NCBI RefSeq assembly: GCF_018350175.1
Contig: NC_058382.1
Span: 3,844,001 to 3,908,000, forward strand
Reading direction: 5' to 3'
Origin: Felis catus
Lineage: Eukaryota
DNA length: 64,000 nt
Below the pieces are notes generated by a model. That model was not told the DNA's origin, searched no databases, and saw nothing but the letters and a program-made list of their open reading frames with translations. Both the position numbers and the translations under genes were made by a program. The stretch's first letter is position 1. Each line of letters opens with the position of its first letter. This document shows, piece by piece, positions 35,801 through 61,869 of the stretch.

Positions 35801-37265
35801 CCCAGGAGGGACCGGAGGGAGGGAGGCCGAGGCGGCAGGAGGAGGGGGAGGAGGAAGAGGGGCGAAAGCCGGGGAAGGCGGGGGGGGGGGGGGGGCGCAG
35901 GGCCGCGCCAGCGCTCGCCCCCGTCCGTGCCCCTCGCAGACGAGCTGCCGCGCCCGTCGCTGGTGGCGCTGCCCGGCCCGGTGGTGGCGCCCGGGGCCAA
36001 CGTGAGCCTGCGCTGCGCGGGCCGCCTGGGGGGCATGAGCTTCGCGCTGTACCGCGTGGGCGAGGCGGCGCCGGTGCAGTACCGCCGCTCGGCGCAGCCC
36101 TGGGCCGACTTCCCGCTGCGCGGCGCCCGCGCGCCCGGCACCTACAGCTGCTACTACCACACGCCATCCTCCCCGTACGTGCTTTCGCAGCGCAGCGAGC
36201 CGCTGGTCATCAGCGCCGACGGTGAGGGCTGCGCGCGGCCCCAGCCCCTGCTCCTGCTCCCGGACCCGCAGCCCCTCCGTGCTTTCCATCCTGGGGGTCC
36301 GGGCCCCCAGCCCCTTCTCATGGGACCCGGGGGTCCGGGCCCCTAGCCCCTCCCTGCTCCCCATCCTGGGGGTCCGGGTCCCCAGCCCCTTCTCATCGGA
36401 CCTGGGGATCTGGGCCCCAGGTTCCTCCCTGCTCCCCAACCCGGGGGTCCGGACGCCTAGCCCCTCCCTGCTCCCCATCCTAGGGGCTCGGGCCCCCAAC
36501 CCCTCCTGCTACCACCTGGGGGTCCGGGTCCTCAGCCCCTTCTCATCCGACCAGGGGGTCTGGGCCCCTAGCCCCTCCCTGCTCCCCAGCCCAGGGGTCA
36601 GGTCTCCCAGCTCCTCCCTGCTCTTCAACCCAAGGGTCCCGCCCCCCAGCCCCTCCCTGCTCCCCTGCATCCTGGGAGTCCGGGCCCCCAGCCCCTCCTG
36701 CTACTCACCTGGGGGTCTGCGCCCCCAGCCCCTTCTCATCTGACCCCACGGTTGGGCCCCTGGTTCCTCCCTGCTCCCCATCCTGGGGGTCCTGACCCCG
36801 GGTTCCTCCCTGCTCTCCAGCCCAAGGGTCCAGGCCCCTAGCCCATCCCTGCTTCCCAACCAGGGAGTCTGGGCCTCCAGCCCCTCCCTGCTCCCCACCT
36901 GGGGGTCTAGGGCCCTGGCTCCTCCCTGCTCCCCAACCTGGGGGTTCAGGCCCTATCCCCTCCTCCCCAAACCCAAGGGTTCAGGACCCCTGCTCGCACT
37001 GACCCACCTCAACTTTGAGACTGGGAATTGTGTCTGCAGTCTCACCCTGGAGGTTAGAGACCAGGAGGGCAGGGCAGGCCGAAACTGGGTTCGGAAGCTG
37101 AAGACCCCTCTTCCTCGCTGCCCTGCAGGCTCAGGCTCCTTGGACTACACACAGGGCAACCTCGTCCGCCTGGGGCTAGCCGGCCTGGTGCTCCTCTCCC
37201 TGGGCACGCTGGTCTTTTTGGACTGGAGCAGCCGGAGTCGCATCCCATGTAGCGTTCGGCCCTGA
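29939..37265 (+). CDS. OSCAR: Osteoclast-associated Ig-like receptor, 262 aa, 5 exons
   Basis: Exons 29939-29975, 30680-30712, 34665-34964 (Ig1), 35940-36221 (Ig2), 37129-37265 (TM/tail). All GT-AG, 789 nt. MILVLILLLLALWPLCNADITPTVPPASYPKPWLGAQP...YTQGNLVRLGLAGLVLLSLG with the conserved FcR-gamma-coupling TM Arg. Confidence 0.97.
30160..30640 (+). repeat. Highly degenerate MSR1-like minisatellite in OSCAR intron 1
   Basis: Recurrent ggagctgggggcccagactcctg / gggggctggggccagacttc / cctgaactcctgggg motifs with a period of roughly 35-40 bp. Confidence 0.55.
31075..31602 (+). mobile_element. Three CAN-SINEs inserted in a MIR remnant (OSCAR intron 2); source-like copy of a composite element
   Basis: Heads at about 31080, 31185 and 31376. 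The last has TSD aagaaataggatctctgg. Confidence 0.85.
31760..33410 (-). mobile_element. Minus-strand CAN-SINEs (about 31760-32025, 32990-33210, 33215-33410) flanking an old AT-rich L1-like fragment
   Basis: Reverse SINE bodies (gagagagacagagcatgaacgggggaggggcag ... cccaggcgcccc) with AT-rich L1-like sequence between them. Confidence 0.8.
33864..34456 (+). mobile_element. Composite SINE-spacer-SINE element flanked by a 14-bp TSD, with a later SINE inserted inside
   Basis: TSD aaaccatggagtaa at 33850-33863 and 34457-34470. The inner SINE has TSD aaaaacccttgg at 34002-34013 and 34228-34239. Confidence 0.85.
35140..35360 (+). mobile_element. MER20-like DNA transposon; further copies at about 52205-52420 (minus) and 55005-55215 (plus)
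   Basis: gtgatctttggcaatatccggagacatttttggtcgccgtgactgggga...gaattatcca...aaaatgtcactagtgctgaggttaggaaacc resembles the MER20 consensus. Confidence 0.75.
35665..35895 (+). repeat. Purine/G-rich low-complexity tract ending in a G16 run just upstream of OSCAR exon 4
   Basis: Many GGG/GGGG runs separated by A, with a pure G run at 35880-35895. Confidence 0.9.
36291..36995 (+). repeat. MSR1-like 36-39 bp minisatellite, about 19 units, in OSCAR intron 4 (C-rich strand on plus)
   Basis: Unit ctgggggtccgggcccccagcccctccctgctccccatc, with a variant ending ccccttctcat..gac. Tandem periodicity is directly visible. Confidence 0.93.
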
Positions 37266-42100: not shown

Positions 42101-44019
42101 CTTTCAAAAAGAAGAGAGAGGCAGCAAGGTCAGAGTCAGAGAAGGGAACCTAGAGACAGAAGCAGAGGTCAGCATGAGGCAGGGTCATGAGGCCAGGAAT
42201 GCAGGCTCCTCTAGAAGCTGGAAAAGCAGGGACCTGGGTCTCCCCACAGCCTCCAGAAGGAAGGCAGCCTCTCCACCCATTTTGGACCTCTGACTTCCAG
42301 AACAGAAAGATAAAAATTTTATGTCATTTCAGGCCACGAGTTGGTGACAATCTGTTACAATAGCAAAAGCAAAGCTAATACTATTAGCTTCAGCGGAAAC
42401 CTCTTTTCCTTTTCTCGCAAACCTGGGCCTGTTCATCCTTAGGACGTGCATTTTCGGCCCCGAGCCCTGCTTCCCCCCCCCCCTCCAGTTCCCATTCACC
42501 CACTTGGGACACATCTGTCCAATGTCCACCTCGCGTGGGGCACTGTGCTGGTGCTTGGGGACACAGCACACACACCCTGCTGCCATGAAGCTCACCCAGG
42601 AAAGCACGGGCCAAATTGGTACTCGCCGTACTGATCAGGGAGCACTTTCAGCTGCTGTAACCAAGAGACCCCCCCCCACCCCCCGCCAAAGAAAAAGAAA
42701 ACCATGTAATTTGATTTCTCCCTCACTTAACAATATATAGAAGAAACAGTCTAGGGCTGTTTATCAACAGCTTTGTTTCTGTCAGTATGTAGCTTTCCTA
42801 GGTGGTTCTGAGCCAGCACGAAAGGAGGACCAAAGAGAGACAAAGAGAGACAGAGAGGGAGGGAGGGAGGTATCGCACACAATCATTTTTTAAAAATGGG
42901 AGGGGGTTTCTATTACTTAAAGGAAGACAGGAAAAGTGGATGCCGGGAAACCATTTGCCTCTCCATCAGTACAACCAGAGCAAAAACCAAGAGGGAGTTT
43001 TGAAAGCCTCTAATAGGATTTGATCCAATCAATGGAGATCTCTGATGGCTTTGCTGAAGAAGTGAGGTGAGATCTGAAAGTTGGGCAGACCTTAACTAGA
43101 CAAAGAGGGGCTGGAAGGGTGTTCTAAGCAGAGGGAACAGCCTGTGCAAAGGCTCCCTGCGGAGGAAGCTAGGGGGTTGCGGCTGGGAGACCGAAAGTCG
43201 TGTGCTGTTGCCACCTTGTGGTCACATCATGTGCCTTGATGGGTAAGGAAATCCCTGAACTCACCGGTGGCGTGGCACAGGACAATTCTGGCTGGACGAG
43301 TGTCACTTCCAAGCTGGAGCATTTAACTGTAAGAACTCCCTCCTCCCCACTGTGAGTTCCCTCTTGTCTCAGACACAGTGACCAGCAGCGTTTGAGATGG
43401 TGGCTGGTCCACTGGCCTGGCTGCCTGAGTGCCAAGGATGAGCCGGGCCACCCTGCAGGCTTTTTCTACACCTGTCTCCTGCCTCAGCTGGCTCCCAGGC
43501 CCTCCTCCTGGGAGCCCATCCGTGTGACCATCTTCTCGCACACCTGTCTCGGTCTACTCAGGCTCTTGTCAAATGCCACACGCTGGGTGGTTTGAACAAC
43601 AGAAACTTATTTCTAGCAATCCTGGAGGCTGGGAAGTCCAAGATCAGAGTGCCAGCATGGTTCCGGTGAAAGCCCTCTTCCTGGCTTACGGGTGCCCTCT
43701 TGTATCCTCACATGGCAGGGGGAGAGGGAGAGAGGGAAGNNNNNNNNNNNNNNNNNNNNNNNNNNNNNNNNNNNNNNNNNNNNNNNNNNNNNNNNNNNNN
43801 NNNNNNNNNNNNNNNNNNNNNNNNNNNNNNNNNNNNNNNNNNNNNNNNNNNNNNNNNNNNNNNNNNNNNNNNNNNNNNNNNNNNNNNNNNNNNNNNNNNN
43901 NNNNNNNNNNNNNNNNNNNNNNNNNNNNNNNNNNNNNNNNNNNGGAGAGAGGGAGAGCAGGGGGAGAGGGAGAGAGGAGAGAAGGAGAGACCTGATGTTT
44001 TCTCATGTCTCCTTTTCTT

Positions 44020-44106: not shown

Positions 44107-46184
44107 CATAAGCGGGGCAGGGGCAGGAGTGAGGGAGACAAAAGCAGGTTCCAGGCTCTGAGCTGTCAGCACAGAGCCCGACGCAGGGCTGGAACCCACA
44201 AACAGTGAGATCATGACCTGAGCTGAAGTCGATGCTCAACCAACGGAGCCACGTGGGTGCCCCTAATGTCTTTCTTTTTAAGTTTATTTTTGAGAGAGAC
44301 AGACTGTACTCTTTGTACAGAGACAGAGTACAAGCGGGGGAGGGGGAGGTAGAGAGGGAGACACAGAATCTGAAGCTGGCTCCAGGTTCCAAGCTGTCAG
44401 CACAGAGCCCAACGCGGGGCTCGAACTCACAGACTGTGATATCATGACCTGAGCCAAAGTCGGACGCTTAACCGACTGAGCCACCCAGGCACCCCAATTC
44501 CAGCCAATTTAGAACATGCATAGAAGCAAAAGGAAAAAAAAAATATTGAGCACAATTCCACCACTTGGAGGATTTACCCTTCTAGATTTCTCCATGCACA
44601 CGTCAGCTCCTGCCCATTGCCTGGGTCCACTGCCTGGGTTGTCTCTCTGTCTGCACCTCAGCCAGGGTCCCCGAGCTCTTCTTAAGAGCCCCTTCCCACT
44701 CAAGATCTAATGAGTAGAAGATTTCACAAGAGATTTCACCGAGGAGGGAGTTCAATCATGTCCCCACAGCAAACAGTTTTCAAACCCACCACAGAACTTT
44801 CTCTTCTTCAAATTCCTTGTTCGCCATGCTGCCTGCCAGTGAGGGTTCTTTTCTCTTACCTCCTCTCTGTAGGGCCTGTTGTCTCGTTCTCCCAGATCCT
44901 CATCCATCCCTGATGCCTTGTGACTTCTTCCCTCTCAGGGAAGTTGTGCACATCTCTTCTGCTTACATCCTATGACCAGAAGGACCTACGGTTCCCCAAT
45001 GGAGAGAAATGGGTCTCTTATTCTGGACTGCTGGGGGCCCAGCTCTTTTCAGCCACTTGGCAAAAGGGGACAAAGGCTAGCAATTTCTCCCATGCTTTGC
45101 ATATTCATGGACGTGCCTTAGCAGTGGATGATTGCTGTGCTGGGCATGAAGCCTGTGGGAAGTGGCTTGAGAGTGTGTTGCAATAGTCCTTTCCTAACAG
45201 AGACCAGAAGACACAACGTGTGGGTAGGTAGAACAGAGGTTTGAAAAACTGGGAGCAAAGCTGTTCCTGCCTGTCCTGGAGTCAAGAGAACGTTTTGGCT
45301 CACCACCAACAGCAAAACTCAAGGAATATCCTTGGAGGAGGCTTGGGGGCGCCGCCATGATGCCCCAGCTCCCGACCTGGCTCCGCACCGGTAAGCCCTG
45401 CGGGGGCAGATGGGCTGTGGCGGCAGCTGGAGTTGGTGGGACCTTCGGGGGCAGTAGTGGGGCGGGGGTGAATAAGCACAGACTAGAACCTTCCATTCCC
45501 TGAATACATGTTAGGTACAAGGACGCTTTACACACATTTTCCTGTTTCCCCAAACTCAGTCATCCCTGAACTGCCCAATGAATGACATTGTGCCCTATGT
45601 CTGTGACAGGTCCCGGGTTTTCACGTTAGTATTTTTATGCTCAACTCTATTTTATTATTTAAAAAAGTTTAAAAAATATTTTATATATTTTTGAGAGAGA
45701 GAGAGAGAGACAGAATTCGAGTGGGAGAGGGTCAGAGAGACAGGGAGACACAGGATCTGAAACAGGCTCCAGGCTCTGAGCTGTTAGCACAGAGCCCGAT
45801 GTGGGGCTCGAACCCATGAACTGTGAGATCATGACCTGAGTTGAAGTCGGACACTTAACCAACTAAGCCCCCAGGCACCCCTATTTTATTATTTATTTAT
45901 TTATTTATTTAAAAATTTTTTTTCAACGTTTTTATTTATTTTTGGGACAGAGAGAGACAGAGCGTGAACGGGGGAGGGGCAGAGAGAGAGGGAGACACAG
46001 AATCAGAAACAGGCTCCAGGCTCTGAGCCATCAGCCCAGAGCCTGATGTGGGGCTCGAACTCACGGACCGCGAGATCGTGACCTGGCTGAAGTCGGACGC
46101 TTAACCGACTGCGCCACCCAGGCGCCCCCCTATTTTATTATTTAAAAAAATTTTAAGTTTATTTGAGAGAGCAAGTGGGGGAGG

Positions 46185-46229
<45 letters not shown>

Positions 46230-46360
46230 CAAGTGTCCAAGCAGGCTCTGCACTGTCAGCTCAGAGCCTGGCGCACGGCTCAAACTCATGAACCCTGAGA
46301 TCACGACCTGAGCCTGAACCAACAGTTGGACGCTTAACCGACTGAGCCCCCCTGGCTCAA
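44020..46360 (-). mobile_element. Five minus-strand CAN-SINEs (about 44030-44262, 44280-44495, 45655-45885, 45905-46128, 46140-46350) around TARM1 exon 1
   Basis: Reverse SINE bodies with GA-rich tracts and cccaggc(a/g)cccc heads. Confidence 0.85.
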
Positions 46361-49300
46361 CTGTACTCAACTCCATTTTAAAAGATCTGTAAAACTCATG
46401 TATTAGTGGGAAAATCCGTGCCCCTCATCAAAAGCAGACCCGAACCGGCCCCAGTTTTCCCCGGTCTTGTTTCTGAGAGGTAGCAGCGAAGCCGGAAGCT
46501 ACGTTCAGCCGAGCACCCGGCTGTGGTATCTTCCAGGGGCTTGGTGGAGAACGAGCCAGGAACCGAGAAGAGAGAGACTTTCTCACACAGGCTCAGTGAT
46601 ACCCTCCTGTCATCATACGACCGGGAGTCACCTTCCATCTCTTAGAGAGCTTCTCCAAAATAGTCCTCTTCCCCATACTGCATTCGAGGAATCGGAAAAT
46701 CAGCCCTGAAGTCCATGCCAAGGCCACTCAGCTACTAAGCGGAAAAGCTGAGCTCCAATTCTGGTCTGCGCAGGGCCAAAGACCGTAATTCTCCATGGAG
46801 CCACACGAGGGAACTGAAAGGGTCCGGCGTGGGGGGGGGGGGCGGGGGGGCTCTGGGGTGGAAACATCTGGAGGCTGAACAAAGGGAATCATGGTCAGCA
46901 CGACCACAAGAAGGTAAGTGAACAGTGAATCCCTCTTAGGAAACGTCCGGCAACCTTTTCAGAAGGGCTCTGTGGCCACAGGGTGTTGGTCCCACTCAAC
47001 CGTTCAGAATGGCTCTCATCTTGCGACAAGTGTTGACGAGGATGTGGTGCAAAGGGAGCCCACGTGCTCTGTTGGCAGGAATGCACACTGGTGCAGCCAC
47101 TGTGCGGAAAACAGTTTGGGGGCTGGTTCCTCAGAAAGTTAAAAACAGAACCACCCGGCGATCATTCACCCCACTTCGGGGCTGTGTGTCAGAAGGAAAT
47201 GAAAACAGGACATTGAAGGGCTATCGGTGCCCCCACGTTCATTGCAGCGTTATTCACAAGGCATGGAAGTGACCTAAGTGTCCATCCACCGACAAACAAT
47301 GGAATAAGATGCAGCATGTTACATACAAGGGGATGTTATTCGGCCGTGAGAAAGAAAGAAATCCCACCATCTGAGACAACACGGAGGGGCCGTGAGGGCA
47401 TCGTGCTCAGTGAAACCAGTCAGAGGGAGAAAGACACTGGACTACTTGTATGACCTCACTTGTATGTGGCACCTAAACATGTTGACTTGTTGAAACACGA
47501 TGGTGGGATGGTGCTTGCCAGGAGCTGGGGGTGGTGGGGAGAGGGAGATATGGATCCAATGGTCCATGCTTGCAGTTCAAGGACGAGTGAGTTCTGAGGC
47601 TCTAACGTACAGCATTGTGACCACAGATGGCAATACGGTATTACGTGCTTAAAAAAAAGTCTCAAGATAGTGCCCAACGTCCCTGGTGTGTGTGTGTGTG
47701 GGGGGGTGCAGAACCACTGTTATACACTAATCAAACTAGAACACCTATAAGAATGTGCAGGAACATATTTCTTGGGGTCAGTTTGGTCTAGATCTGAAAG
47801 TAAGGCCCCCAGAGGGGAAAGGTGGGGGATATACACTTCATCTTTCCAAGTAATACCAATCTTAGATTTCTGAGATTTACTCTGGGGCACCAAGGAAATG
47901 ACTCATGGCCAACCGTAATGTCCGAGATGCATTTCGGTCATACCTTGAGGGCAGACAGAAGTATCTCAGCACAAAGGACTGTGCTCTCAGTGTCTAGATG
48001 TCCCCTATCATAGGGCAGGGATCTCCCCACCTCACTCCATGTCCTGACTCCCGGGAGCTGTGGATACCTTCCTTTACATGGCAGAGGAGATACACACAGG
48101 GTGGCAGGTGGAATTAAACTTATCAGTTGACCTTGAAGTAGGGAGCTTCTTCTGGATTACCTGGGTGGCCACAGTGTAACTGCAGGGTCCTTAAAATAGC
48201 AAAGCAGGCAGAAGAGGGTGCCAGTGCACCAACCATTGATAGTTTTAAAGTCAGAGGGAGGGGCGCCTGGGTGGCTCAGTTGGTTAAGCGTCCGACTTCA
48301 GCTCAGGTCACAATCTCGCGGTCCGCGAGTTCGAGCCCCGCGTCGGGCTCTGGGCTGATGGCTCAGAGCCTGGATCCTGCTTCCGATTCTGTGTTTCCCT
48401 CTCTCTCTGCCCCTCCCCCATTCATGCTGTGTCTCTCTCTGTTTCAAAAATAAATAAATGTTAAAAAAAATTAAAAAAAAAAAGTCAGAGGGAGACGCTG
48501 CCATGATGAGATGCAGGCATCTCTAGAAGTTGGAAAAGGCCAGGGAATGGATTCTTGTCTCGAGCCCCAGAGGGAACGCAGCCCCAAAGAGACCCTGGGT
48601 TTAGCAGTGAGACTGTTTTGGGGCTTTTCTACCCCACAGAACAGCAAGATAATAAATCTGTGTTGTCACAAGCCAAGTTTCTGACAATTTGTTAATGGCA
48701 GCCATAGGAAATTAACACAAGGTGCAAACCAATGCCCACGCCAGATGGGTTCCTGGGCAGCATGCTGGGACTGGCCGTGAGCGGGACCTCCAGGGTCTGG
48801 TCTCAGGGGCAGCCCCCCGGGAGGTCCCCTCAGGATGGGGCTCAGGTTCCACGGACAGACGGTTCTCTTGCAGGGCTGTGCGCTGGCCAAGGAAGCAGGG
48901 GGACTGACGGTGAGTGTTCCTTCAGTTCTTCAGTTCCTCCCTCCCCTTTGCTCCAAATTCCCCACATCCCTTCTCTTTCCTTCAAGGGGTTTCCTGACAG
49001 CAGGCAAGGGCACCAAATCCTGTCCCCAGTCTGCTTCCTTCCAGAGCCCCTTCCCAAGCCCACCCTCAGGGCCTGGCCCAGCTGGGTGGTACCTCCCAGA
49101 AGCAATGTAAGGCTGCAATGCCGAACTCCGACCAAGAATGTCAACTTTGCTCTCAGAAAGGGAAATATTCTTTTGGATTTTTCACGATCACCGGCTTCCA
49201 AGAAGGGCCTGGCTGAATTTCACTTCACTGGCCTAAGAACCAGCCATGCTGGAGACTACACCTGTGAGTGCTACAGACCAGGGGCCCCGGACATAAGATC

Positions 49301-49891
49301 ACCGCCCAGTGAGGTCATCCTGCTGCTGGTGACAGGTGAGGAGCAGGACGGGCCTGGGGGAGGGACCAGAGGAGGGGACAGAGAAGGTGGAGACACACAG
49401 CAACAGAATGACTTGGTCGGCCTCATCCAGGGCTCGTGGGGGGGGGGGGGGAATCTCCTTCCCACAGAGTCGAAAGAGGGTGACACCAGGGGTCTGTGTC
49501 CCACACTCAGCAGGAACCCCCCCGCGGGAGAACAAGGGTGAGTGGGGGACTCCAGGCTTCTCCCCGTGACCTCAGAGCCCCCCTTCTCTTCCAGGAGGTC
49601 TCCCTAAACCTTCCCTGCAAGCCCACCAAAGGGGTGTGGTGACCGCAGGAGACGACGTGACCCTGCAGTGCCAGAGGCCAGACAATATTTTCGGGCCCAT
49701 GAGGTTCGCCCTGCTGAAGGCGGGAGTGGCAGAGCCCATCAGGCTCCGGACCCCAGCCGGCAAGGAGGCGGACTTCTCCCTGCAGACTGTGACAGTCGGT
49801 GACGCCGGGAACTACAGCTGTGTCTACTTCCAGACCGGGACTCCTTTCTGGGCCTCACAGCCTAGCGATCGTCTTGAGATCTGGGTGAGAG
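45357..49891 (+). CDS. TARM1: TARM1-like receptor: two leader exons plus two Ig-domain exons
   Basis: Exons 45357-45390 (34 nt), 48874-48909 (36 nt), 49045-49335 (Ig1 EPLPKPTLRAWPSWVVP..CRTPTKNVNFALRKG..AGDYTCE), 49595-49891 (Ig2 GLPKPSLQAHQRGVVTAG..VTLQCQ..FALLKAG..PAGKEADFSL..GDAGNYSC..PFWAS.PSD.LEI). The frame is open, the sequence is clearly similar to human TARM1 as recalled, and the position next to OSCAR is syntenic. Confidence 0.92.
46990..47660 (+). mobile_element. L1 3'-end fragment in TARM1 intron 1
   Basis: gatgtggtgcaaagggagcccacgtgctctgttggcaggaatgcacactggtgcagccactgtg...gttcattgcagcgttattcacaa...aagtgtccatccac are L1 3'UTR motifs. Confidence 0.8.
48030..48720 (+). mobile_element. 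MLT1-type LTR interrupted by a young CAN-SINE (48261-48480)
   Basis: SINE TSD aaagtcagagggag at 48247-48260 and 48481-48494, with MLT1 motifs on both sides. Confidence 0.8.
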
Positions 49892-50559
49892 GTGAGGTTT
49901 TTACCATTGGGAGGACCCCAGCTGGATTACCTGCCCGCTCAGGTGCTGCCACAGTCTGCCTCCACAAGATTCTGCAGCTTGGAGCAGTCATTTGGGAAGG
50001 ACCGAGGGAGGGCCAGGATTCCGTGGAATAGAGCAGAGGATCTTCGCAGAGGATCTTCTGCTGAGAGAGAGGGAGCACCAATGGTGGAGATCACATAACT
50101 GGAGGCTGGGAGGGGGGCTTCCCACTGTAGGTGACCAACTGTGTTGTGAGGGGGCCAGGCCTGGAGGAGGAGGGATCTGTAATAATTGACCCCTGCCCTC
50201 ACCAGGAAAATAAGATGTAGACACAAAGTCATTGCTGTTCTCCTGGGAAGGGCACAATTCATTTAGACTCAAGTGTGGATGACACCTCCTGGGGTTATAC
50301 AGGAGGAGAGTCTAGCAAGAAGGCAGAGGAGGAGGGAGAGAATAACAAAGGGTCCAGGAACATCTTTCCGAGAAAGATTCAGACTCCAGGAAGATCTCAG
50401 TTTCATTTTAACCGGGACTCTAGCACTCTTGCCTTTAGCTCAACTGAATCGAGTTTTTCTCTTCCTGCTGAGACTTTTCCTTCTTTTTGAAAGGAATGAT
50501 TTTTACAAATTATGGCAAAACTGCATAAGGTAAATTTTGCCATCTTAAGTATTAAAAAA

Positions 50560-53455
50560 TTTTTTTTTAACGTTTATTTAAAATTTTTTTTTCAACGTTT
50601 TAATTTATTTTTGGGACAGAGAGACAGAGCATGAACGGGGGAGGGGCAGAGAGAGAGGGAGACACAGAATCGGAAACAGGCTCCAGGCTCCGAGCCATCA
50701 GCCCAGAGCCATCAGCCCAGAGCCTGACGCGGGGCTCGAACTCACGGACCGCGAGATCGTGACCTGGCTGAAGTCGGACGCTTAACCGACTGCGCCACCC
50801 AGGCGCCCCTTAATGTTTATTTTAGAGAGAGAGACAGAATCCAAAGCAGGCTCCAGGCTCTGAGCTGTCGGCACAGAATGCGACTCATGAGCTACAAGAT
50901 CATGACCTGAGCTGAAGTCGGATGCTTAACCAACTGATCTGCCCAGGCGCCCCTTAAGTATCTGCCTCCAGAATGCTCTGCATCTTGTAACACTGAAACT
51001 CTGTCCCCATCAAACAGCCTCTCCTCACCCCTCCTCCCCAGCCCCTGGCACCCACCGTCCTACACATCGTCTTAGTCAATCTGACGAATCCAACGACCCC
51101 ACATCATTGGAATCATTGAGTATGTGTCTTCTTATGTCTGGCTCATTTTGCTCAGAATAATGTCCTCAAGGCTCAGCCACACTGTAGCACATAACTGGGC
51201 TTCTTCCTTATTAAGGCTGATAACGTCCCATTTTATGGATAGACCGCATTTTGTCTCTTCATCAGCTGATGGACGTTTGGGTCGTTTCCACCTATTTGGC
51301 TGTCGGCCGGTCACCTACTGGCCATCGCTTCTTCCGGATGTATACTCAGAAAGGGGATGGGGCGCCTGGGTGGCACAGTCGGTTAAGCGTCCGACTTCAG
51401 CCAGGTCACGATCTCGCGGTCCGTGGGTTCAAGCCCCGCGTTGGGCTCTGGGCTGATGGCTCAGAGCCTGGAGCCTGTTTCTGATTCTGTGTCTTCCTCT
51501 CTCTCTGCCCCTCCCCCGTTCATGCTCTGTCTCTCTCTGTCCCAAAAATAAATAAACGTTGAAAAAAAATTAAAAAAAAAAAAAGAAAAAAGAAAGGGGG
51601 TTGCCGGATCATATACTACTTCTGCTTTTAATTTTTTGAGGACCCACCACCCTGCTGGTCTCCATAGTGGCCACACCATTCTACATTTCCACACCCAGTG
51701 CACACAGATTTCTGTTGGTGTGTTTCTGAAACAGATGTTTTTTGACCCTTGTGTAGTAGGGCCAGTTTTGAGGACTGAGTTTGTCCAGGACAAGAGGAGG
51801 GAGAGAGGCCAGCAGGAAGCAGGCATCCTCCCGGACGGGGGTACTGAATCCCCCAGGGTTGATATGGGGCCAGTCATAACTGCACAGGGCACTGACCAAT
51901 GAACCCAGATTCTCCCAAACCACACACGGGGTAGGCATTCAGGGCCTCTGAGAAAAACCACACGGGGTACGAGATTCTGAAGTCAGTGGACCCGCAACTC
52001 ACTTCTCTCGTCTGTCAAGTGGGGGGGGGGGGCAGTGATGCATACATCTGACCATGAACTTCTGTGAGAAGGAGACATAATAGTAATCAATTATAAAGGA
52101 GAGTTGGATGATTGTATTAGTCATGGCACTTGGTTCCAAGTGAAAAAAACACCGATCTCGAAGTGACCTAGAAAAGGTGAGGTCCTTGGAATTAAACGGG
52201 TCATTCAGGGCTGCCCAACCCGGCACTACTAACATTTGGAGTTGGATAATTATTCTGCGGGGCAGGTGAGGAAGAAAAGTGCCTCCTGTGTAACATAGGA
52301 TGTTTGCAGCATCTCGGATGTCTACCTACTCCACGTTCCCTTTCCCAGCTGTGACAACCATGGTGTCTCCAGACACTCCAGATGTCCCGCAGGGGGCCAG
52401 ACTGTGCCCGGCCAGACACAGCTGGGATCCAGAGCTAGTGAATCTTGGGAAGCATGAGGATACCACCTGGCTTCACAAACTAGAATGAGGGACTGGAGTC
52501 TTGCCCAGATTCTCTTCCTTTCTGACACTTGTGTCTTTATCGTACCTGTTTCATTCTCTTTTAAACTTTTTAAAATGTTTTTATTTTTGAGAGACACAGA
52601 GCGTGAGTGGGAGAGGGGCACAGAGAGAGAGAGGGAGACACAGAAGCTGAAGCAGGTGCCAGGCTCTGAGCTGTCAGCGCAGAGCCCGAAGTGGGGCTTG
52701 AACTCACGAACCGTGAGATCATGACCTGAGCCAAAGTCAGATGCTTAACTGCTTTACGGACTGAGCCACTCGGGCACCCCTGTTTCATTCTCTTTTAGTG
52801 GGGACCAGTTCCCTCTTTGGGGCAGAGAGCTTGGCTTTTAAAGCTGAGTTTCGTAGCTCATAAATTCTACTCCTGGAGAAGCATCCGGCTCTCCTTCCGA
52901 GACCAGTTCAAAACAGACAGATAGATAGACAGACTGGGGAGGGCTGTGAATAGTCCTGGTTAGCTCAGCCTCTAGATCGATCCTAGGAAATGCTCATGGA
53001 AGGATGCCATTCAAGAAAACCCAGCCCCATCCAGGGAGACTGGAATGTAGGAGGGTAATGAACAGTTCCTAAAAGAATGAGAGTTGCTACCCTTTGATCC
53101 GATCCTATGGGCTGAAGGTCTGTGTCAACCCCCCCCCCCCCAATTTCATGTTGAAATCCTGACCCCTAACGTGACAGCATTAGGAGGTGGGAGCCTTTGG
53201 GAGGAGCTTAGGTCATAAGGGCGGAGCCCTCATGAGATCAGTGCCCTTCTAAAAGAGACCCCAGAAACTCCCTTGTCCCCTTCCTCCACGTGGGGCTCTA
53301 GAAGTCTGCCGCCCAGAAGAGGGCCCTCCCTGGACCATGCTGCCCCCCTGGTCTCGAACTTCCCGTCTCCAGACCTGTGAGAAAAAGGCATCTGCTGTTC
53401 ATCGTCCCCCTAGCCTGTGGCATTTTGTTAGAGCAGCCCCAACGGACTAAGCCGA
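50560..53455. mobile_element. Repeat-dense block after TARM1 Ig2: SINEs (about 50560-50955 minus, 51359-51595 plus, 52565-52790 minus), L1 minus fragment, MER20, MLT1 (about 53105-53455)
   Basis: Recognisable SINE heads and tails, L1 3' motifs in reverse, and MLT1 ccccaatttcatgttgaaatcctgacccc. Confidence 0.75.
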
Positions 53456-53672
53456 CGAGGGAGAGGTACGCCCAGCAAGTGTGTTTGCTTCAGAGTCACA
53501 GACCCCCGAACAGAGCAAGAAAATCCCAAAGTCTGGATGTTGATCTGGAACCCATCGGCCACACGGGGTAGAGGAGAATGTTTGTCTCTGCCCCCTGCTG
53601 GGGCCATGGAGCCCAGGAGTGAGGCAGGGAATTCTCACATCTAGGATTCACCTGCTTCATGCTGTTTTCTAG

Positions 53673-54654
53673 GTCAGCGTGAAGGACATTCCATGTCCCC
53701 TCCAGGGAGAAGTAAGGCAACTGGGGGAAAGGGGAGAACAACCACACAACCAGGGATGGGCACCCGTCACTTGGGTACATGGCCCCACCGTCTCCAAGTG
53801 TGTGTACGGACTCTTGAGTTGCAGATAATTATAACCGCTTGGATTTGGGCTGGGGCCAGTACCTAACAAGCTACCTGCCTACACATTCCTTAGCTTCCCT
53901 CTGTCTCAGCTTCTGTATCTGTCAGGGGTTGATAGTAGTACCTACATAAGGGACTCGTGCTTGGGATTTTGAGGAGTTATTTTACCTAAATCCCTCCTAA
54001 ACTGTGTCCGGTGGACAGCAAAATATTATCTAAGGATCTGCCATTATTATCATTATGAAACACCCAAAACTTCCTCCTCTGACTACTGAAGCAGCTTTAT
54101 CAAGAACTCCATTCCTCAGGGGAGACTTTCCAGGAAACAGAGAGCCTGCATATCCCTCGGAAGGTACCGGTAAATATCCTTATCGTTATAATGAATGATA
54201 AATATTAGTGGAAAATTCCACGACCTGTTAAGGGCTTCCTGGTTCTAAAAAAGCCCATGGGTGCGTGTCTGTGTCTTTAACTCACTTCAACTGTACGTGA
54301 CACGGTTAAGCACCGATGAGATGGTCTTTCCAAAACAGGATGATAAAACAGAACGGAAAGAAAAATACCACGAGCTAGATTGGCTCTCTGTAGGAGGGGG
54401 AAATTTTACATAATTTTGGGTTCTTCCACAGCTAGTGAATCATTTTTTTTTCCCACTTCTTTATTTATCCTTGGCATATGAGGACACTTCTGAGTTTCTT
54501 CCTCGATGGTCATAAATATTGCTGCTTCTGACATGAATACATCAGTGACAGGACACTTCACCAAGAAGGACCCGGGAAGCTGTTGTCAAGTTCAGTGTCG
54601 ACCTTTCCTGTCTTCCTTCAGCCACGGTTCCAACCCTGGCAACTGTCGCCAAGG
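53673..54654 (+). CDS. Predicted small stalk exons of the TARM1-like receptor: 53673-53711 (39 nt), 54134-54169 (36 nt; or 54120-54169, 50 nt) and 54622-54654 (33 nt, GC donor)
   Basis: Pyrimidine-rich acceptors (gctgttttctag, attcctcag/ctttccag, ctttcctgtcttccttcag) and donors gtaagg, gtaaat and gcaaga. The phase-1 reading gives GQREGHSMSPPGR / RNREPAYPSEGT / ATVPTLATVAK. Prediction only. Confidence 0.5.
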
Positions 54655-56462
54655 GCAAGACTGAGGAAGAGAGGAGGACATCATGGCGGGGAGGGCGTGT
54701 TTGGCAGGCAGACGACTGGGTACAGGTGCATTGGCAGATTATTGAAAATGGAGCCCGAGGGTTTCCCTTTGGGATCCCCCAGAGCCTTTTACAAACCCTC
54801 ACAGTTTTACGTGGCTCTTGCAGGGGCCAGAACCGTGAAGCTGCAGCTACCCCCCCCCCCCCCCCCCGTGTTTGACTTGTGGGGACGTGAGCGTCACCTG
54901 ACTGGCCAAGGGCAGGAGGCGGGGAGAAGGTGGGCGGCAGGAATCCTGACAAAGGACAAGGAAAGAGAAGTCCCTCGCTTTCGGGTCACCTCTTATTTTC
55001 CTCAGGCCACTGGTTGTCCCCTGGGGGCGATTTTCCACTCGGCAGCATATGGCAATGTCTGAGACAGTTTTGGCGGTCACCGCTGGGGGCGGGGGATGCT
55101 TCTGGCATCTAGGAGGTAGAGACCACGGATGCCTCAAAACACCCTACGACGCAAGGACCCCTCCCCGCGAAGAATCATCTAGCCCCAAATATCAGTGGCG
55201 CCCAAGAGGAGAAATCCTGCTGTAGACCCGCCGTCTAGTTTCCAGTTAGACACCAGAGTTCTTGCAGGGATCTCACAGGTGGAGACCATACTCCCCTCCA
55301 ATTCCTGAAGCCTCGAATTACTTCAACTACGTGCCCCAGACCAGTAGCTGTTTCAGAAAATACTTACCAGTGATACCGGCATCACCTGTCTTCCTTGAAG
55401 GCCGCTTGTGATGTTTGGGGCTTTTTCTTTTTTTTTTTTCTCCCTTTATTCCGGTTTGATTTGTCTCCAGGCTCCCAGAGATTTCTTCGGAGCCAGACCC
55501 CAGGGTTTCGTGGGGTTTCCTCGTCATTTCCGAAGTTGGAACAAGACGAGTGCAGTCTCCGGTTCGGAGGAGAGCAGAATGCAGCTGGCGGTGGGGGAGG
55601 CTGAGTCGGCAGGAGGAGGCTGGGACAAACGGTGTCCCACCTCCTGACGGTGTGGCTGTGCAGGGCAGAGGTGAAGAACCATAGGCGGTACCACAGGGAA
55701 CAGAGGAGACAGTGGTCGGGAGTCAGCAGGCTTCCCAGGCTTGCCTTCTCTGAAGTGTAAGGCTGAGGGTAGGGGTCGGCTTCAGGCTCGAGGAGGCGGG
55801 GCCAACACAGCTGTGGATGATAAAGGCAATGAAGAGTCATGTGGTGTCACATCAGTAGAGCTTTGTGAAGCTCGGCTCTGCTACTCACTGGCTGTGTGAC
55901 CCCGGGCAACTCTGGAGCCAACAAGCTAGAGACCCCGGGAAGAGGTGATGTCGAATCTGAAGGCAGCCGGAAGCCGAATTCCTTCATCCTCAAAGGAGAT
56001 CAGTCTTGTCTCCTTGGACCTTTGACCTTTGATTAGAGGAGGCCCACCCACATGATAGAGCTTAATCTGCTCCGCTCAAACTCTACCGCCTTAGATGTTA
56101 AACACATCTTCTTTTTAATGAATTGACTTAAGATTGCATTTGCTTTATTTCACTGTAATTCCAGTGTAGTCAACGTAGAGCGTTATATTAGTTTCTTGTG
56201 CCAGCTTCCTGGCCACCATTCTAGGCTCGTATTAGACCCAAACAACTGGGTACCGCGGCCTAGTCGTGTTGACACATAAAATTAACCATCACACCCGCCC
56301 ACATAAGAGTCTTGGGATCCTTGAATGGGGTCTGGACATTTCTGGAATACACTCACCTTCCCTTTCTGCATTCCATCTTACTTGTTTCCTAGCTAAACCT
56401 AAAACTCACAAAAATTTCCCTCCAGAAACCAGCAAGACAACGGATGAGGATTAGCTTTCTTT

Positions 56463-57260
56463 TGGGGCACCTGGGTGGCCCAGTCAGTTAAGCGTCCGAC
56501 TCTTGATTTCAACTCAGGTCACAGTCTCACAGTTTGTGGGCTCGAGCCCCGCATCGGGCTCTGCACACTGTCCGTGGCACTGTCCGTGCGGAGCCTGATT
56601 GAAATTCTTTCTCTCTCCCTCTCTCTCTGCCCCTCCATCACTCTCTCTCTCTCAGAATTAAAAAAAAAAAAAAAAAAAAACCTAAAAAGAAAAGAAAGAA
56701 TTTCCTTTCTTTTGAGAAATCTGAAAAAGTACTATCTAGTAGAAATAACAAATAGCAGATACTCACGTATCCACCACTCATAATTATACTTGTTCACATT
56801 TTGTTGTATTTGCCCCAAAGCTGTTTTCTTTCCACAAGATAAAAAAAAAAGAAGTCCTTTTTCTCTCTCAACATTACTTCTGTTATTTTTCCCCTTTCCA
56901 GAACTTTCCGCCCTGAAGTTGGTGTTATTTCTGTGCAGGTCTTTACACTTTTACCACATAGACATGCCTTTGTAAACACAGCATAGAGTTTTACATTCTA
57001 TTTACAATTATTTAAGTTTAAAATTTAACTATAGGGGGCGCCTGGGTGGCTCAGTCGGTTGGGCAGCCGATTTTGGCTCAGGTCACGATCAGGTCTGTGA
57101 GTCTGAGCCCCACGTGCTGACAGCTCAGAGCCTGGAGCCCGCTTCAGATTCTGTATCTCCCTCTGTCTCTGCTCCTCCCCCTCTCACACTCTGTCTCTCT
57201 CTGTCTCTCTCTCTCAAAAATAAATATTTAAAAAAAATAAATAAATAAAATTTAACTCTA
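56463..57260 (+). mobile_element. Two CAN-SINEs (about 56463-56690 and 57034-57260); further SINEs at about 59110-59310 (minus), 60807-61042, 62215-62420 (minus), 63524-63735 and 63830-64000
   Basis: SINE heads, CT bodies and A/AT tails. Confidence 0.85.
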
Positions 57261-57732
57261 GAATTCTCTCTTCTAGATAAAACTGAAAGGAAATCACCCA
57301 AGGGAGCAGAAACAGGACTCGGTAGGAGCACAGATCTTACATACACTCATCCATGCGTGGGATGAGATATCCTTGTGACCCTGTGAACTGTCCACACCTG
57401 GGAAAGTTCTCAAGGATGTCTGTCTGTCTTGTGGTGACGCCTGAAGGCTGTGGCTCAGTGTGAGGTCTTTCGAGGTGGGTAGGATTAGGGGCGCAGCCCT
57501 GCCTAGTTACCTGGGCCACTTTGGAAAGGGAACTTCAAATCTCTGATGCCCAGCTTCTGCATCTGTGGAATAGGCATCACTCACTCTGTCGCTCTCCCGG
57601 GATACTTGTGTGAAGAGAATGTCGTGAGAGCTCCAGCAAGTGGTAGGAATGTGATCGACGGGGGACACAGTGAGGTGCCTCAGTGCACACTCAGGGAACC
57701 ACTGACCCTCTCACCTACTATCCTCTCCCCAG

Positions 57733-60656
57733 GGACCACGGGGATTCCCCCTCGCTGTGGTCTTTGCCCTTCTCTTCCTGCTTGGAGCCTTCCTCATCTA
57801 CAAATACACCCGGTGGGGCGAGTTCAGGAAAACAAGGGCTAAATACCTGGGAGGAAATGGGAGAAACAGAACGGGAAAGTAACATCACGGGGTCAACACT
57901 GTCTCTGTCTCTTTCATCCCCAGGGGCGGCTCCCGACAACATGACCAAACGGTAGAGCTACTCAGCGAATCCCCTCAGCCCATACCGAACCCTTCCCCCA
58001 CTATTGCCTTGACCACTCAAGACCCCCTTTCTTACCTGAACCTTTCATGTGCCCCCGACCAGCCCCGACGATCATCCCCAAGTGTCTCTCCACGTCCTCT
58101 CTTCTCATGACCACCTTCCACTTCTCGCTCAAGGTTCTTCCCTTGGATCCTCTCCTCGTGGACCACACTGTCCCCAACCACTTCTCCTCCTCAGCTCTCA
58201 AGACTTTGCTGAGCACCTGAATGACGTGGGGACCCTCGTGTGGGGTGTATGAGCGTGGAGGAGGTGGGGGGGGACTTTGGTTTACACATGATCTTGCTGG
58301 GCGCCTCACCTCCGCCTCCCCGCAAGGATCCTGACATCTCGCTCCAATTCCCTTTGTCTCCGGTGCCTCACTGTTTCTCTCTTTCAGCTCCTGCTCTTCT
58401 GAGAAAAAGTGGAGACAAGTAATCAGCCCGGGAAAGAGAGCGATGGTGGGTACACGTGTGTGTGTGTGTATTTGGATGCGTGTGGTGTTCTCAAATAAGC
58501 ATGTATATTTGAGTGTGTGTCTGTGAGTCTGCACGTGTAGGTGTGCAGGGATATATGTACGCGTGTGAACACGCATATGCACGTAGAGGTACGTGAATGT
58601 GTGCATGTGTATAGACGTGCATGTTTGTGTGTTGTGCGTGCACACGGGTGTGGTTTGCACGTCTGTTGCACGTGAATGTGGCGTATGTGTGTGTCACGTG
58701 CATGCCTTATTTGTGTGTGCACACACGTGCGTGCATGTGTGTGAGAGGGTGTGTAATGTGAATGTGCATGTGAGTGGGATTGTGTGTCCAGAGTTAACCC
58801 CTGGGGCCTGGGGGGGAAGCAACAGCAGGACCTTTTCCCTCCCAGATACAGCCACAGCCACGATGAGCTGTCCTCCTGCATCAGTGAGCGTCCCCTGTGG
58901 ACATTTCCCATCCCCTCCTTGTCCCAGGCTCTCCGTTCTTCCTGCCAGTTTTGTCAATGGTCTGGGCTCCCGCGTCCATCCACCGCCACCCTCACTCTAC
59001 ACTCCAGGAGAATCTGGTCTGAACCCTTCTGTGCCTTCTCTGGCCAGGGGACCTTCATCCCATGTCCTTTCTGAGGACATTATCCCAGGTGACTTGTGAT
59101 GAACATCACCTTTTTGTTTTTGTTTTTGTTTTACGTTTCTTTATTTTTGAGAGACAGAGAGCAAGCAGGGGAGGGGCAGAGAGAGGGGGAGACACAATCC
59201 AAAGCAGGCTCCAGGCTCCGAGCTGTCAGCACAGAGCCTGACATGGGGCTCCAACTCGTGGACCGTGAGATCATGACCTGAGCTGAAGTCGGACGCTTCA
59301 GGCACCCCCACATCACCTTCTCCCTGGGATTAACAGGGTGGTTTAATGAGCTCAGAGACACAGAGGGGTCAGTGAGATCTCAGGCACACCGTAAGCATTC
59401 AGTACCCTGAAGCTACTGCTATTATAAACCATTGGTCATAATCGCGGGTAAGTGACTCTCCCACCCTGAGCCTCAGGGTCTCCATGCGCACAATGGGGGT
59501 AATATGCCCCACCTGTTGGTGCAATTTAGGAAAACACGGTAAGAGCTCTCTGTAAAGCACGTACCGTGAAGTACCCACACAGCACACTTATTAATAGTAA
59601 CGTTTATTTTATCCTTTACAGTTCAGTTTCTTTTACAAAATTGTGGCGAAATGCACATAAGCCTAAAATCCACCATTTTAACCCGGGATATTCACAACTT
59701 TCGGAATATTCACAACGTTGTCCAATAATACCCCACGAATCCAGTTCGAGAACATTTTCATCGCCTCGAAGGAAACCCCACACCCTGTAAGCAGTCTTTC
59801 TGCACACCCACACCGCCACCCCAAGCCCCTGACAACCACTAGCTTCCTGTCCCTAAGGATTTGCCTACTCTGGACATCTCACATTCACACTAACATGATG
59901 GCTGTCTATTTGAGTTATCTGAAGTTTCATAACAAATCATCCCCAAATGCAGTTGGTTAAGGCAACACTTAGGATCTCAGTGTCTGCAGGGAGGGAGTCT
60001 GGGTGTGGCTCAGCGACGTGGTCTCTCGTTGGGTCTCACAAGGCTGGGACGAAGGCATTGGCTGCTGGTTCAGGCTTGAGTAAGAGAGGATTTGCTTCCA
60101 CACTCACTCAGGTGGCGGTTGGTGGGACTCAGGTCCTTGCTGGCTGTTGGCCAGAGACCACGTTGGCCATATGGACCTTTCCATACGGCAGCTCCCAACA
60201 CAGCAGCTGGCTTGATCAGCACGAGTGAGGGAAACAGGTGTGAACAAGATGGAAGTCATAACTTAGTCTTTCATAACCTAGTCTTGGACACGACACATGA
60301 CAGCCCATCCTTCTTGCTTATTCCGATTGACAGATGCAGGTCACTAGGTCCCGCCAACCTTCGAGAGGGGAAGGGACTGCACGAAGACTCGAAGGGCAGG
60401 AGGCTCTTCCTAACACAGCTGTCTACCACACTGTCATCACAAACGCTAAATCTCCACAATCTAACACTCTTTCCCGGGGGGACTTGATCCTTCTCTCCCT
60501 GCTTACCTTCAGGATGAAGCATCCCAGGTCTCAAGAGCTGAGGAACCCCACGGAGTGACATATGCTGAGCTGGACATCAGAGCCCTAAGTGAGGGTCCTT
60601 CCAGCCAGATGGAACAGCCCCTGGAAACCTGTGTGTACTTGACCCTCAAGACATAG
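57733..60656 (+). CDS. Uncharged TM exon plus VSTM1/LAIR1-like ITIM-bearing cytoplasmic exons (inhibitory receptor tail)
   Basis: TM exon 57733-57817 (..FPLAVVFALLFLLGAFLIYKYTRW, GC donor), 28-nt exon 57924-57951 (GAAPDNMTKR), candidate exons 58388-58418, 58846-58883 and 59048-59088, and terminal exon 60513-60656 DEASQVSRAEEPHGVTYAELDIRALSEGPSSQMEQPLETCVYLTLKT*. The terminal exon parallels human VSTM1 ADPQGVTYAELSTSALSE..EYAALKV (recalled). Confidence 0.8.
58449..58787. repeat. Alternating purine-pyrimidine TG-rich repeat within the receptor tail region
   Basis: tacacgtgtgtgtgtgtgtatttggatgcgtgtgg...gtgcatgtgtatagacgtgcatg. Confidence 0.9.
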
Positions 60657-61869
60657 CTGGGAGAGTGCCTGGAGCCCAGCAAACAAGATCTTCCGATGGA
60701 TGATGGAGAGCCCTTGGGGTGCCAGGCAAATGGGGATCCCTTTCCTCAAATCTGCAATGAAGACTCATTGCTTCTAAAAATTTATTTTTTACATGAGAGG
60801 TATCAGGGCGCTGGGGTGGCTCAGTCGGTTGAGCGTCTGACTTCGGCCCAGGTCACGATCATGATCTCATAGTTCATGAGTTTGAGCCCCACGTCATGCT
60901 CTGTGCTGACAGCTTGGAGCCTGGAGCCTGCTTTAGAGTCTGTGACTCCCTCTCTCTGTCTGTCCCTCCCCTGCGTGCTCTCTCTCTCAAAAATAAATAA
61001 ACATTAAAAAATTTTTAATAAATAAATAAATAAATAAATAAATGAGAGGTATCATTTGCAGAGTGAAATGCACAAATCTTGCACAGCTAAGTGACTACAG
61101 ATAGATGACTGACAGATATAGATATATAGATATCCCAGTAATCTATCTCTACCTATCCCCTTTGGTATAACCACCGTCCAAATAAACACAGTATTTCCAG
61201 AACTCCAGAAGGTTTCCCTGTGACACCCTCCAGTCAACCACCACGGCCCCAGAGACCCTTCCTTTTTCTGCCTTTTCACCACCTTTTCATCACTTTTCAA
61301 GCCTGTTCTTCATATGCCCTCACATACACGTGGCCACGCTATGTGTTCTCTTCTGTGTCTGGCTTCTTTCACCCAAATACATCGTTCCTGAGGTTTATCC
61401 CCGACGTTACATGTAGTTGTGTTTTCTTCCCTATCTACCGCTGAGCATCACTCCAATGCACATTCATGCCACGGTCACGGAGAACGGTCTCCAGGGGATG
61501 GACAATTGGGTTGTTTGCAGGCTGCGGCTTCTGTGGGCCAGCTTGCACGAACACTCTTAGCTATGTCTTTGCAGACATGGGCACATGTGCACACATTCCC
61601 CCTGGAATATAAATAGTGGGATGGCTGGGTCAAAGAACAGGTGTATGCTTAATTTCATTTGCTACTTCTGAACAGTTTTATAAGGGGGTTGTACTACTTC
61701 CTGCTTCCTTCCTGACAAGCGCTCAGTGTTTTTCTTGATAGCTGCTCTTCTGTTCACACTCCCTTCTCGCCACAAAGCTGCTCCATCACCTTACACAAGT
61801 TTGTGGCTGCGAGCAAAGCCTTCACTGTGACCTGTGACCTCCAACTATTCTCACTCCTGGTATTTGTGT

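Follow-up and report, generated by a model that had tools for sequence, protein, structure and literature searches.

The 64,000-nucleotide stretch of Felis catus DNA considered here (contig NC_058382.1, forward-strand positions 3,844,001 to 3,908,000; hereafter the window) contains an OSCAR gene followed, on the same strand, by a gene that RefSeq labels 'TARM1-like'; the activating receptor gene TARM1 comes third in this order and in the same orientation. Window positions 1-64,000 correspond to C39:3844001-3908000, and coordinates with the prefix C39: lie on the same contig outside the window. An earlier interpretation made from the letters of this DNA (the sequence-only reading) had suggested that the middle gene may be a 'signal-inverted TARM1', an intact inhibitory receptor of 371 residues (aa) particular to this lineage and paired with activating OSCAR. 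Our analysis leads to a different view: the cat locus is likely a copy of a conserved, unnamed eutherian gene of the leukocyte receptor complex (LRC) that has been broken by frameshifts. The homology, the exon structure and the frame breaks on which this view is built are read directly from the assemblies.

Judged by exon alignment, the immunoglobulin (Ig) exons, the uncharged transmembrane (TM) exon and the exon with ITIMs (inhibitory motifs of immunoreceptors, centred on tyrosine) are parts of one gene, not two, as the sequence-only reading had supposed. A protein search with Ig1 returned felid 'TARM1(-like)' models and meerkat isoforms; of the latter there were three, and in one the Ig domains are linked to a tail carrying VTYAEL and CVYLTL. 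The full meerkat isoform X1 (XP_029780521.1, 398 aa) maps onto ten GT-AG exons of 34, 36, 291, 294, 45, 96, 28, 65, 38 and 270 nt, and because these align with the window exon by exon and throughout, the Ig, TM and ITIM exons are assigned to a single gene. In intact species the design thus begins with a leader of 34 + 36 nt and a pair of Ig exons of TARM1 type; these are followed by the stalk exon of 45 nt, an exon for an uncharged TM, three short exons for the cytoplasmic part and the terminal exon, which in this family encodes VTYAEL and CVY(L/S)TL. The same ten-exon layout is complete in cat, bounded by AG/GT throughout except for a GC donor at the TM exon. Between the Ig exons and the stalk exon, where the 7.4-kb Ig2-to-stalk intron was searched, neither an activating TM exon, nor a relic of one, nor a second leader was found.

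All ten cat exons lie on the forward strand. Exon 1, the first half of the leader (34 nt, 45357-45390), has an ATG and a GT donor and reads MMPQLPTWLRT where intact orthologues have MMPQLLTLLCT; its felid-specific changes are common to the five felids aligned. The second half of the leader, exon 2 (36 nt, 48874-48909), has AG/GT borders, is kept in meerkat and felids, and lies within the RefSeq cat model. Both Ig exons, described by the sequence-only reading as intact and TARM1-type, are indeed open with AG/GT borders: Ig1 (291 nt, 49045-49335) is 97% identical to a Panthera 'TARM1' model, 69% to the meerkat orthologue and 85% to the cat TARM1 protein, and Ig2 (297 nt, 49595-49891) leaves phase 1. 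The RefSeq cat 'TARM1-like' protein (XP_019674419.3) is the exact translation of 45357-45390, 48874-49335 (with intron 2 retained) and 49595-50031 (by read-through of the Ig2 donor), and accordingly stops after Ig2 with no TM and no ITIM. Next comes the conserved stalk exon (45 nt, 57277-57321, phase 1 to 1), encoding DKTERKSPKGAETGL, which matches Panthera XP_060508618.1 and the meerkat models and keeps AG/GT in seven felids and meerkat. The TM exon (85 nt, 57733-57817) is homologous to the 96-nt TM exon of meerkat; the uncharged helix followed by KYTR that had been noticed from the letters is present, with helix and KYTRW in one frame.

The cytoplasmic part begins with exon 7 (28 nt, 57924-57951), confirmed to end in TKR, which reads AAPDNMTKR in the proper frame and shares its AG/GT borders and length with meerkat (21628-21655) and all felids. 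Exon 8 (58388-58445) has 58 nt in cat, one fewer than in five of the six other felids (59 nt), with 60 nt in Prionailurus and 65 nt in meerkat. Exon 9 (38 nt, 58846-58883) encodes DTATATMSCPPAS in the proper frame, and its AG/GT borders and length are those of meerkat (22504-22541) and felids. The terminal exon (60513-60656, phase 0) bears VTYAEL at 60555-60572, CVYLTL at 60630-60647 and a TAG stop, all as previously placed; it is 89% identical in nucleotides to the meerkat terminal exon and is the sole copy in the cat genome at E < 0.09. VTYAEL fits the ITIM consensus (V/L/I/S)xYxx(V/L/I), and CVYLTL, with Cys at position -2, falls outside the consensus as quoted in PMC11848704. The stop itself follows ...LTLKT (60654-60656), where the hyena protein also ends; meerkat has CAG at the position of the cat stop, which lengthens its tail by ~45 residues (terminal exon L001:24129-24398), and the sea lion and one bat model are extended as well.

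With these conserved exons the cat frame is broken. Relative to meerkat, the cat TM exon differs by 12 nt, in frame, at its 3' end and has one base more in a T2C5 tract (57745-57751) whose length varies among felids. This tract gives the exon 85 nt, where 84 or 87 would keep the frame, and so puts the TM helix out of frame: the helix is readable in phase 0 only, and every conserved exon up to the stalk leaves phase 1. Entered in phase 1, as conserved splicing requires, the exon reads TTGIPPRCGLCPSLPAW..., and the shifted frame stays open across exon 7 until, in exon 8, it reaches a TGA (58400-58402), so that the product ends after 276 residues, without a TM. Skipping exons does not help: of the 32 combinations in which the five conserved exons between Ig2 and the tail can be included or left out, not one reads the TM helix in frame, and the few that arrive at the tail in the ITIM frame have no TM. 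The proposal of a membrane-anchored inhibitory receptor would thus fail for cat. The TM-exon donor is GC in all seven felids examined and GT in meerkat. In the leader, the maximal Kyte-Doolittle hydropathy over 8 residues is 0.74 in cat compared with 2.0-2.3 in hyena, meerkat, seal and cat TARM1, and the hydrophobic core of the signal peptide thus appears degraded in cat. The premature stop lies upstream of two further exon junctions, for which reason nonsense-mediated decay would be expected. The cat gene could give at most a truncated, TM-less two-Ig product, likely a target of that decay.

An intact receptor can nevertheless be drawn from other exons. The 'one fully open model' of the sequence-only reading (1116 nt, 371 aa) would mean that in cat cells Ig2 is spliced to mini-exons of 39, 50 and 33 nt, that the TM exon is then entered in phase 0, and that exon 8 is passed over and a 41-nt exon added. 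Such an open frame is constructible, and the 39-nt candidate stalk exon (53673-53711, forward strand) keeps AG/GT-like borders in felids and meerkat. However, if the 39-, 28- and 38-nt exons, the TM exon of 85 nt and the tail are held fixed, 1,981 choices of 50-, 33- and 41-nt exons bounded by AG/GT(GC) are equally open; chance would therefore be expected to yield such an open model, and its openness is not evidence. Because the 39-nt exon is frame-neutral it cannot rescue the TM frame, and the 50 + 33 nt have to be invented for phase 0 entry into a TM exon whose donor is GC, not GT. The model also omits two exons, the stalk exon of 45 nt and exon 8, both of which meerkat and six other felids retain together with the splice sites, making eight species with cat. 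Its 50-, 33- and 41-nt exons occur in none of the retrieved models from any species, and several of the 41-nt candidates fall inside a carnivore short interspersed nuclear element (SINE). The 39-nt candidate itself, unsupported as an exon, is used in none of four meerkat isoforms nor in the other retrieved models, and its length differs between species (meerkat 38 nt, Neofelis and tiger 42 nt). We consider a 371-aa receptor of this make very improbable. The short piece at 53673-53711 may be a relic of an extra stalk exon like that of the elephant and manatee proteins (GIQS...TTPP...).

The same exons were mapped in six further felid assemblies. Six of the seven felids are broken, at differing places. 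TM exon lengths are 85, 86, 87 and 89 nt, of which only 87 (or 84) keeps the frame. Cat and Leopardus have 85 nt with a tract of 7 nt, accompanied in cat by the exon 8 of 58 nt and in Leopardus by a loss of one base in Ig1, a gain of one in the stalk exon and a GG acceptor at exon 8. Three species have 86 nt with a tract of 8 nt, namely Prionailurus (with exon 8 of 60 nt), Acinonyx (which also lacks one base in Ig2) and Panthera tigris (with a GC donor at exon 2). Panthera pardus has 89 nt with a tract of 11 nt and no other lesion found, and Neofelis has 87 nt with a tract of 9 nt, an exon 8 of 59 nt and no other lesion, being open through exon 9 with the tail not reached. These T2C5 tract lengths are not in line with the usual felid phylogeny, and their scatter agrees with slippage in an unconstrained sequence or, with lower likelihood, with homopolymer errors in several of the assemblies. 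Felid RefSeq models end by read-through after Ig2 or after the stalk exon, and protein searches that recovered every other carnivore group returned no felid protein with this TM and tail. The GC donor and the degraded leader are common to felids, which suggests that constraint was probably lost in the felid stem and that lineage-specific frameshifts followed.

Several observations weigh against a decayed gene. Since the Neofelis copy is open through exon 9, the gene may still work in some felids. The cat breaks sit in short homopolymer runs (C5 and a G/A run) and could be assembly errors or polymorphisms; the two cat indels amount to a net -3 relative to Neofelis, which brings the reading back into frame beyond exon 8; the cat's two Ig exons and its ITIM exon are intact; and GC donors can be functional. 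Taken together, these points could mean that living cats have an intact gene and make a normal TM/ITIM receptor by way of the GC donor; the one C too many at 57747-57751 and the base absent from exon 8 would then be assembly errors or rare alleles of the sequenced animal. The joint in-frame effect of two homopolymer lesions, the intact tail, exon 7 and exon 9, and the in-frame Neofelis copy would all agree with this. However, two independent errors in 5-base runs are unlikely in a polished chromosome-level assembly, and in five other felid assemblies, produced by different projects, the frame is lost at this tract as well, with differing tract lengths and with additional lesions at other places. 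That felids share the GC donor and the degraded leader speaks against it too, as does the fact that RefSeq holds no model with TM or ITIM for any felid. An exact-sequence look-up of five window open reading frames (ORFs) spanning the T2C5 tract and exon 8 gave no match in the collection, a result that is uninformative on independent cat contigs. On balance, an intact gene in cats seems improbable.

The preserved Ig exons call for comment of their own. Over the stretch that runs from exon 2 to Ig2, introns as well as exons, each of the two cat TARM1 copies is 95-96% identical to the cat gene; the homology ends ~10 nt after the Ig2 donor. In meerkat the ectodomains of the two paralogues are 89% identical to each other, as against 68% between cat TARM1 and the meerkat TARM1-like gene. 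The within-species likeness of the ectodomain to that of TARM1 is presumably kept by gene conversion, and such concerted evolution is typical of receptor pairs with an activating and an inhibitory member. It is also conceivable that the cat gene persists to supply a secreted protein of two Ig domains, which would act as a soluble decoy for the ligand of TARM1 in the manner of LAIR2 or VSTM1-v2, only the TM and tail exons of the gene being dead. Open Ig exons 95-96% identical to those of TARM1, a TM-less RefSeq cat model, and TM-less isoforms both in the meerkat gene and in human VSTM1 (PMC11848704) would be in keeping with a decoy. Yet the leader has no hydrophobic core, which makes secretion doubtful, Leopardus and Acinonyx are frameshifted within the Ig exons, and gene conversion from TARM1 can by itself explain why the Ig exons are intact. 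We regard retention as a decoy as unlikely, and return to the frameshifted copy and its relatives outside the cats.

In other mammals the gene is open. The tail had been suggested as a query against other species, and protein searches found same-design orthologues in hyena, canids, horses and a mustelid; open full-length proteins with the same TM and tail likewise occur in true seals, sea lion, bears, rhinoceros, many bats and manatee, and elephant and beaver also have open orthologues of this design. The architecture is thus predicted across Carnivora, Perissodactyla, Chiroptera, Afrotheria and one rodent. Open RefSeq 'TARM1-like' models (meerkat, hyena, dog, seal, bear, horse, rhino, bat, manatee, elephant) share the ten-exon layout and have 340-430 aa. 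A profile of stalk, TM and tail retrieved only 33 proteins at E <= 1e-3 among 1.8 billion representatives, with elephant, beaver and marsupial entries included. Across 11 aligned orthologues the TM is free of charged residues, and V-T-Y-x-E and E-T-C-V-Y are invariant. Bat and manatee orthologues are without nine residues of the segment encoded by exon 8 (alignment columns ~70-80), and the meerkat orthologue has an Arg-rich insertion after the TM. The Vulpes vulpes 'OSCAR isoform X2' starts as OSCAR (leader and Ig1) and continues as the 'TARM1-like' gene next to it (Ig2, TM and ITIM tail), either by read-through or as a chimeric prediction.

The cat copy agrees with these RefSeq 'TARM1-like' receptors in its position beside OSCAR, its ten-exon layout, its stalk, TM and cytoplasmic exons and its VTYAEL/CVYxTL tail, but differs from them in the frameshifts of the TM exon and exon 8, the GC donor and the degraded leader; the orthologues are themselves computer predictions. 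The notion of a signal-inverted TARM1 therefore holds insofar as a TARM1-type ectodomain, an uncharged TM and ITIMs do occur in one gene family, whereas the gene is neither specific to this lineage nor TARM1 itself. Our literature search found no paper that names or studies the 'TARM1-like' ITIM gene; the searchable papers treat TARM1 as activating and VSTM1 as a one-domain inhibitory receptor.

The tail half of the gene leads to VSTM1, which encodes SIRL-1. The terminal exon matches the tail of a one-Ig VSTM1-type protein (56% over 32 aa, E 2e-8), and the profile of stalk, TM and tail reaches such a protein with a library-wide E of 2.3e-7; with the TM exon alone, a short and hydrophobic query, BLASTP aligned nothing to the VSTM1-type protein. 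Human SIRL-1, whose motifs are VtYaeL and HeYaaL (PMC6109781), has the identical first ITIM, one-domain isoforms encoded by the TARM1-like gene bear the RefSeq name VSTM1(-like) in grey seal and elephant, and a two-domain armadillo 'VSTM1' has been reported (PMC6557307), the nearest published statement to the TARM1-like gene. These resemblances suit a cat orthologue of VSTM1/SIRL-1 in an ancestral two-domain form. A two-domain VSTM1 orthologue was indeed our first reading, dropped after a better-matching separate VSTM1 locus distal to TARM1 had emerged. When the cat genome was searched with the one-Ig VSTM1-type protein P0102, a one-Ig VSTM1 locus was found at C39:3959258-3970480 on the forward strand, distal to TARM1, and the position of human VSTM1 relative to TARM1 is the same (human order from PMC9695658). 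Its Ig exon (3959258-3959539) is 52% identical to P0102 (E 8e-23), against a weak match of Ig1 of the TARM1-like gene, 40% over only 35 aa, and it has its own TM exon (3967355-3967510) and tail pieces (to ~3970480). Given this separate locus, we judge the VSTM1 orthologue reading extremely improbable. The terminal exon of cat VSTM1 gives GVSYADR... in one frame and ...PPGSCERTVL* in another, so that its two ITIM contexts seem to be lost or frameshifted, a state also seen in rat and mouse Vstm1.

From these comparisons, the TARM1-like gene is a third member of the group, with a TARM1-type ectodomain and a TM and tail half that is probably a paralogue of VSTM1. It shares with VSTM1/SIRL-1 homologous stalk, TM, cytoplasmic and ITIM exons, an identical VTYAEL and a second motif that is atypical in both. 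Human VSTM1 is a 9-exon gene with its ITIMs in the last exon and a TM-skipping soluble isoform (PMC11848704), and TM-skipping soluble isoforms occur in the meerkat TARM1-like gene alike. The two differ in that VSTM1/SIRL-1 has a single Ig domain of another subtype and lies distal to TARM1, whereas the TARM1-like gene has two TARM1-type domains. The second motif of human SIRL-1 (HxYxxL) is atypical yet contributes to inhibition, and SIRL-1 recruits SHP-1/2. Lineage-specific loss through stop codons or ITIM loss is on record for this receptor: mouse Vstm1 is a pseudogene and rat Vstm1 is without an ITIM (PMC11848704). This rodent loss is a precedent for the loss of a SIRL-1-type gene, though of canonical VSTM1 and in another lineage, and the felid decay described here would be a case parallel to the mouse Vstm1 pseudogene.

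The ectodomain half leads to TARM1. Cat TARM1 proper (XP_006941100.1, with an Arg-bearing TM) lies at C39:3915258-3917578, ~10 kb past the tail exon and just outside the window. TARM1 and the cat TARM1-like gene are neighbouring LRC genes whose two TARM1-type Ig domains are 85-98% identical within cat, but TARM1, which is activating and couples to FcR-gamma, has a TM with an NxxR/Arg motif and a short tail (PMC6557307), whereas the TARM1-like gene has an uncharged TM exon and an ITIM tail. OSCAR lies upstream within the window, with exons at 34.6-37.2 kb: Ig1 at 34661-34969 (87% to fox OSCAR Ig1), Ig2 at ~35945-36226 and the TM exon at 37116-37247, apart from which no charged NxxR/Arg TM exon was found in the window. 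An OSCAR-type gene is likewise upstream in Neofelis, Prionailurus, leopard and tiger. Because TARM1 with its Arg TM is a separate gene ~10 kb downstream, the natural activating partner would be TARM1 rather than OSCAR, and the pairing with OSCAR put forward by the sequence-only reading is not upheld.

Further TARM1-type sequence lies beyond. An inverted second TARM1 copy occupies C39:3942693-3945013 on the reverse strand, with an Ig1 of the window gene's type and a TM 100% identical to that of cat TARM1 XP_006941100.1, and a lone TARM1-like match of TM type (45% identity) lies between the two TARM1 copies at C39:3926346-3926495 on the forward strand. Within the window itself, four runs of N (12-165, 17059-17253, 29390-29611 and 43740-43943) amount to 775 bases in total, and carnivore SINE copies (for example 59131-59361 on the reverse strand, 60800-61007 and 48218-48453) yield many long intronic 'ORFs' with translations such as ...AQSVKRPTSAQV...SLSAPPP....

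In intact species, the TARM1-like gene would be the inhibitory half of a paired receptor with TARM1. [quoted passage not shown] The arrangement resembles KIR2DL/2DS and LILRB/LILRA, where adjacent forms with ITIMs and with charged TMs have near-identical ectodomains homogenised within species. It departs from those systems in that ligand sharing and signalling are putative for TARM1-like/TARM1 and the inhibitory member has decayed in felids. In the searchable literature, an inhibitory counterpart of TARM1 is mentioned only as LAIR-1 (PMC7782728) or, loosely, VSTM1 (PMC9695658).

A joint reading of these loci can be offered tentatively. Many non-primate mammals may possess an inhibitory twin of TARM1, made of an ectodomain kept alike by gene conversion and a SIRL-1-type ITIM tail, which could have been overlooked because human and mouse are without it. 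Felids would then have lost this brake, while the tail of cat VSTM1 looks stripped of its ITIM tyrosine contexts and TARM1 is duplicated, which might together tilt the system of myeloid paired receptors throughout the lineage. The Ig exons of the dead gene would then persist only as partners of TARM1 in gene conversion.

The cat locus itself appears to be an ordinary decayed copy of a real, little-noticed inhibitory LRC gene, and the gene family in other mammals is the more interesting lead. For cat immunology, it follows that the inhibitory receptor should not be sought as a membrane protein: reverse transcription PCR and SHP-1/2 tests would probably fail in felids, and the orthologues of dog, horse, bat or meerkat would be better subjects for them. 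For annotation, dozens of RefSeq 'TARM1-like' entries ('VSTM1-like' for the short isoforms) represent one distinct gene that is neither TARM1 nor VSTM1 and deserves a name of its own. For the evolution of the LRC, TARM1 seems to possess, in many mammals, a true partner with ITIMs; published mouse work could put forward only LAIR-1 as its functional counterpart (PMC7782728).

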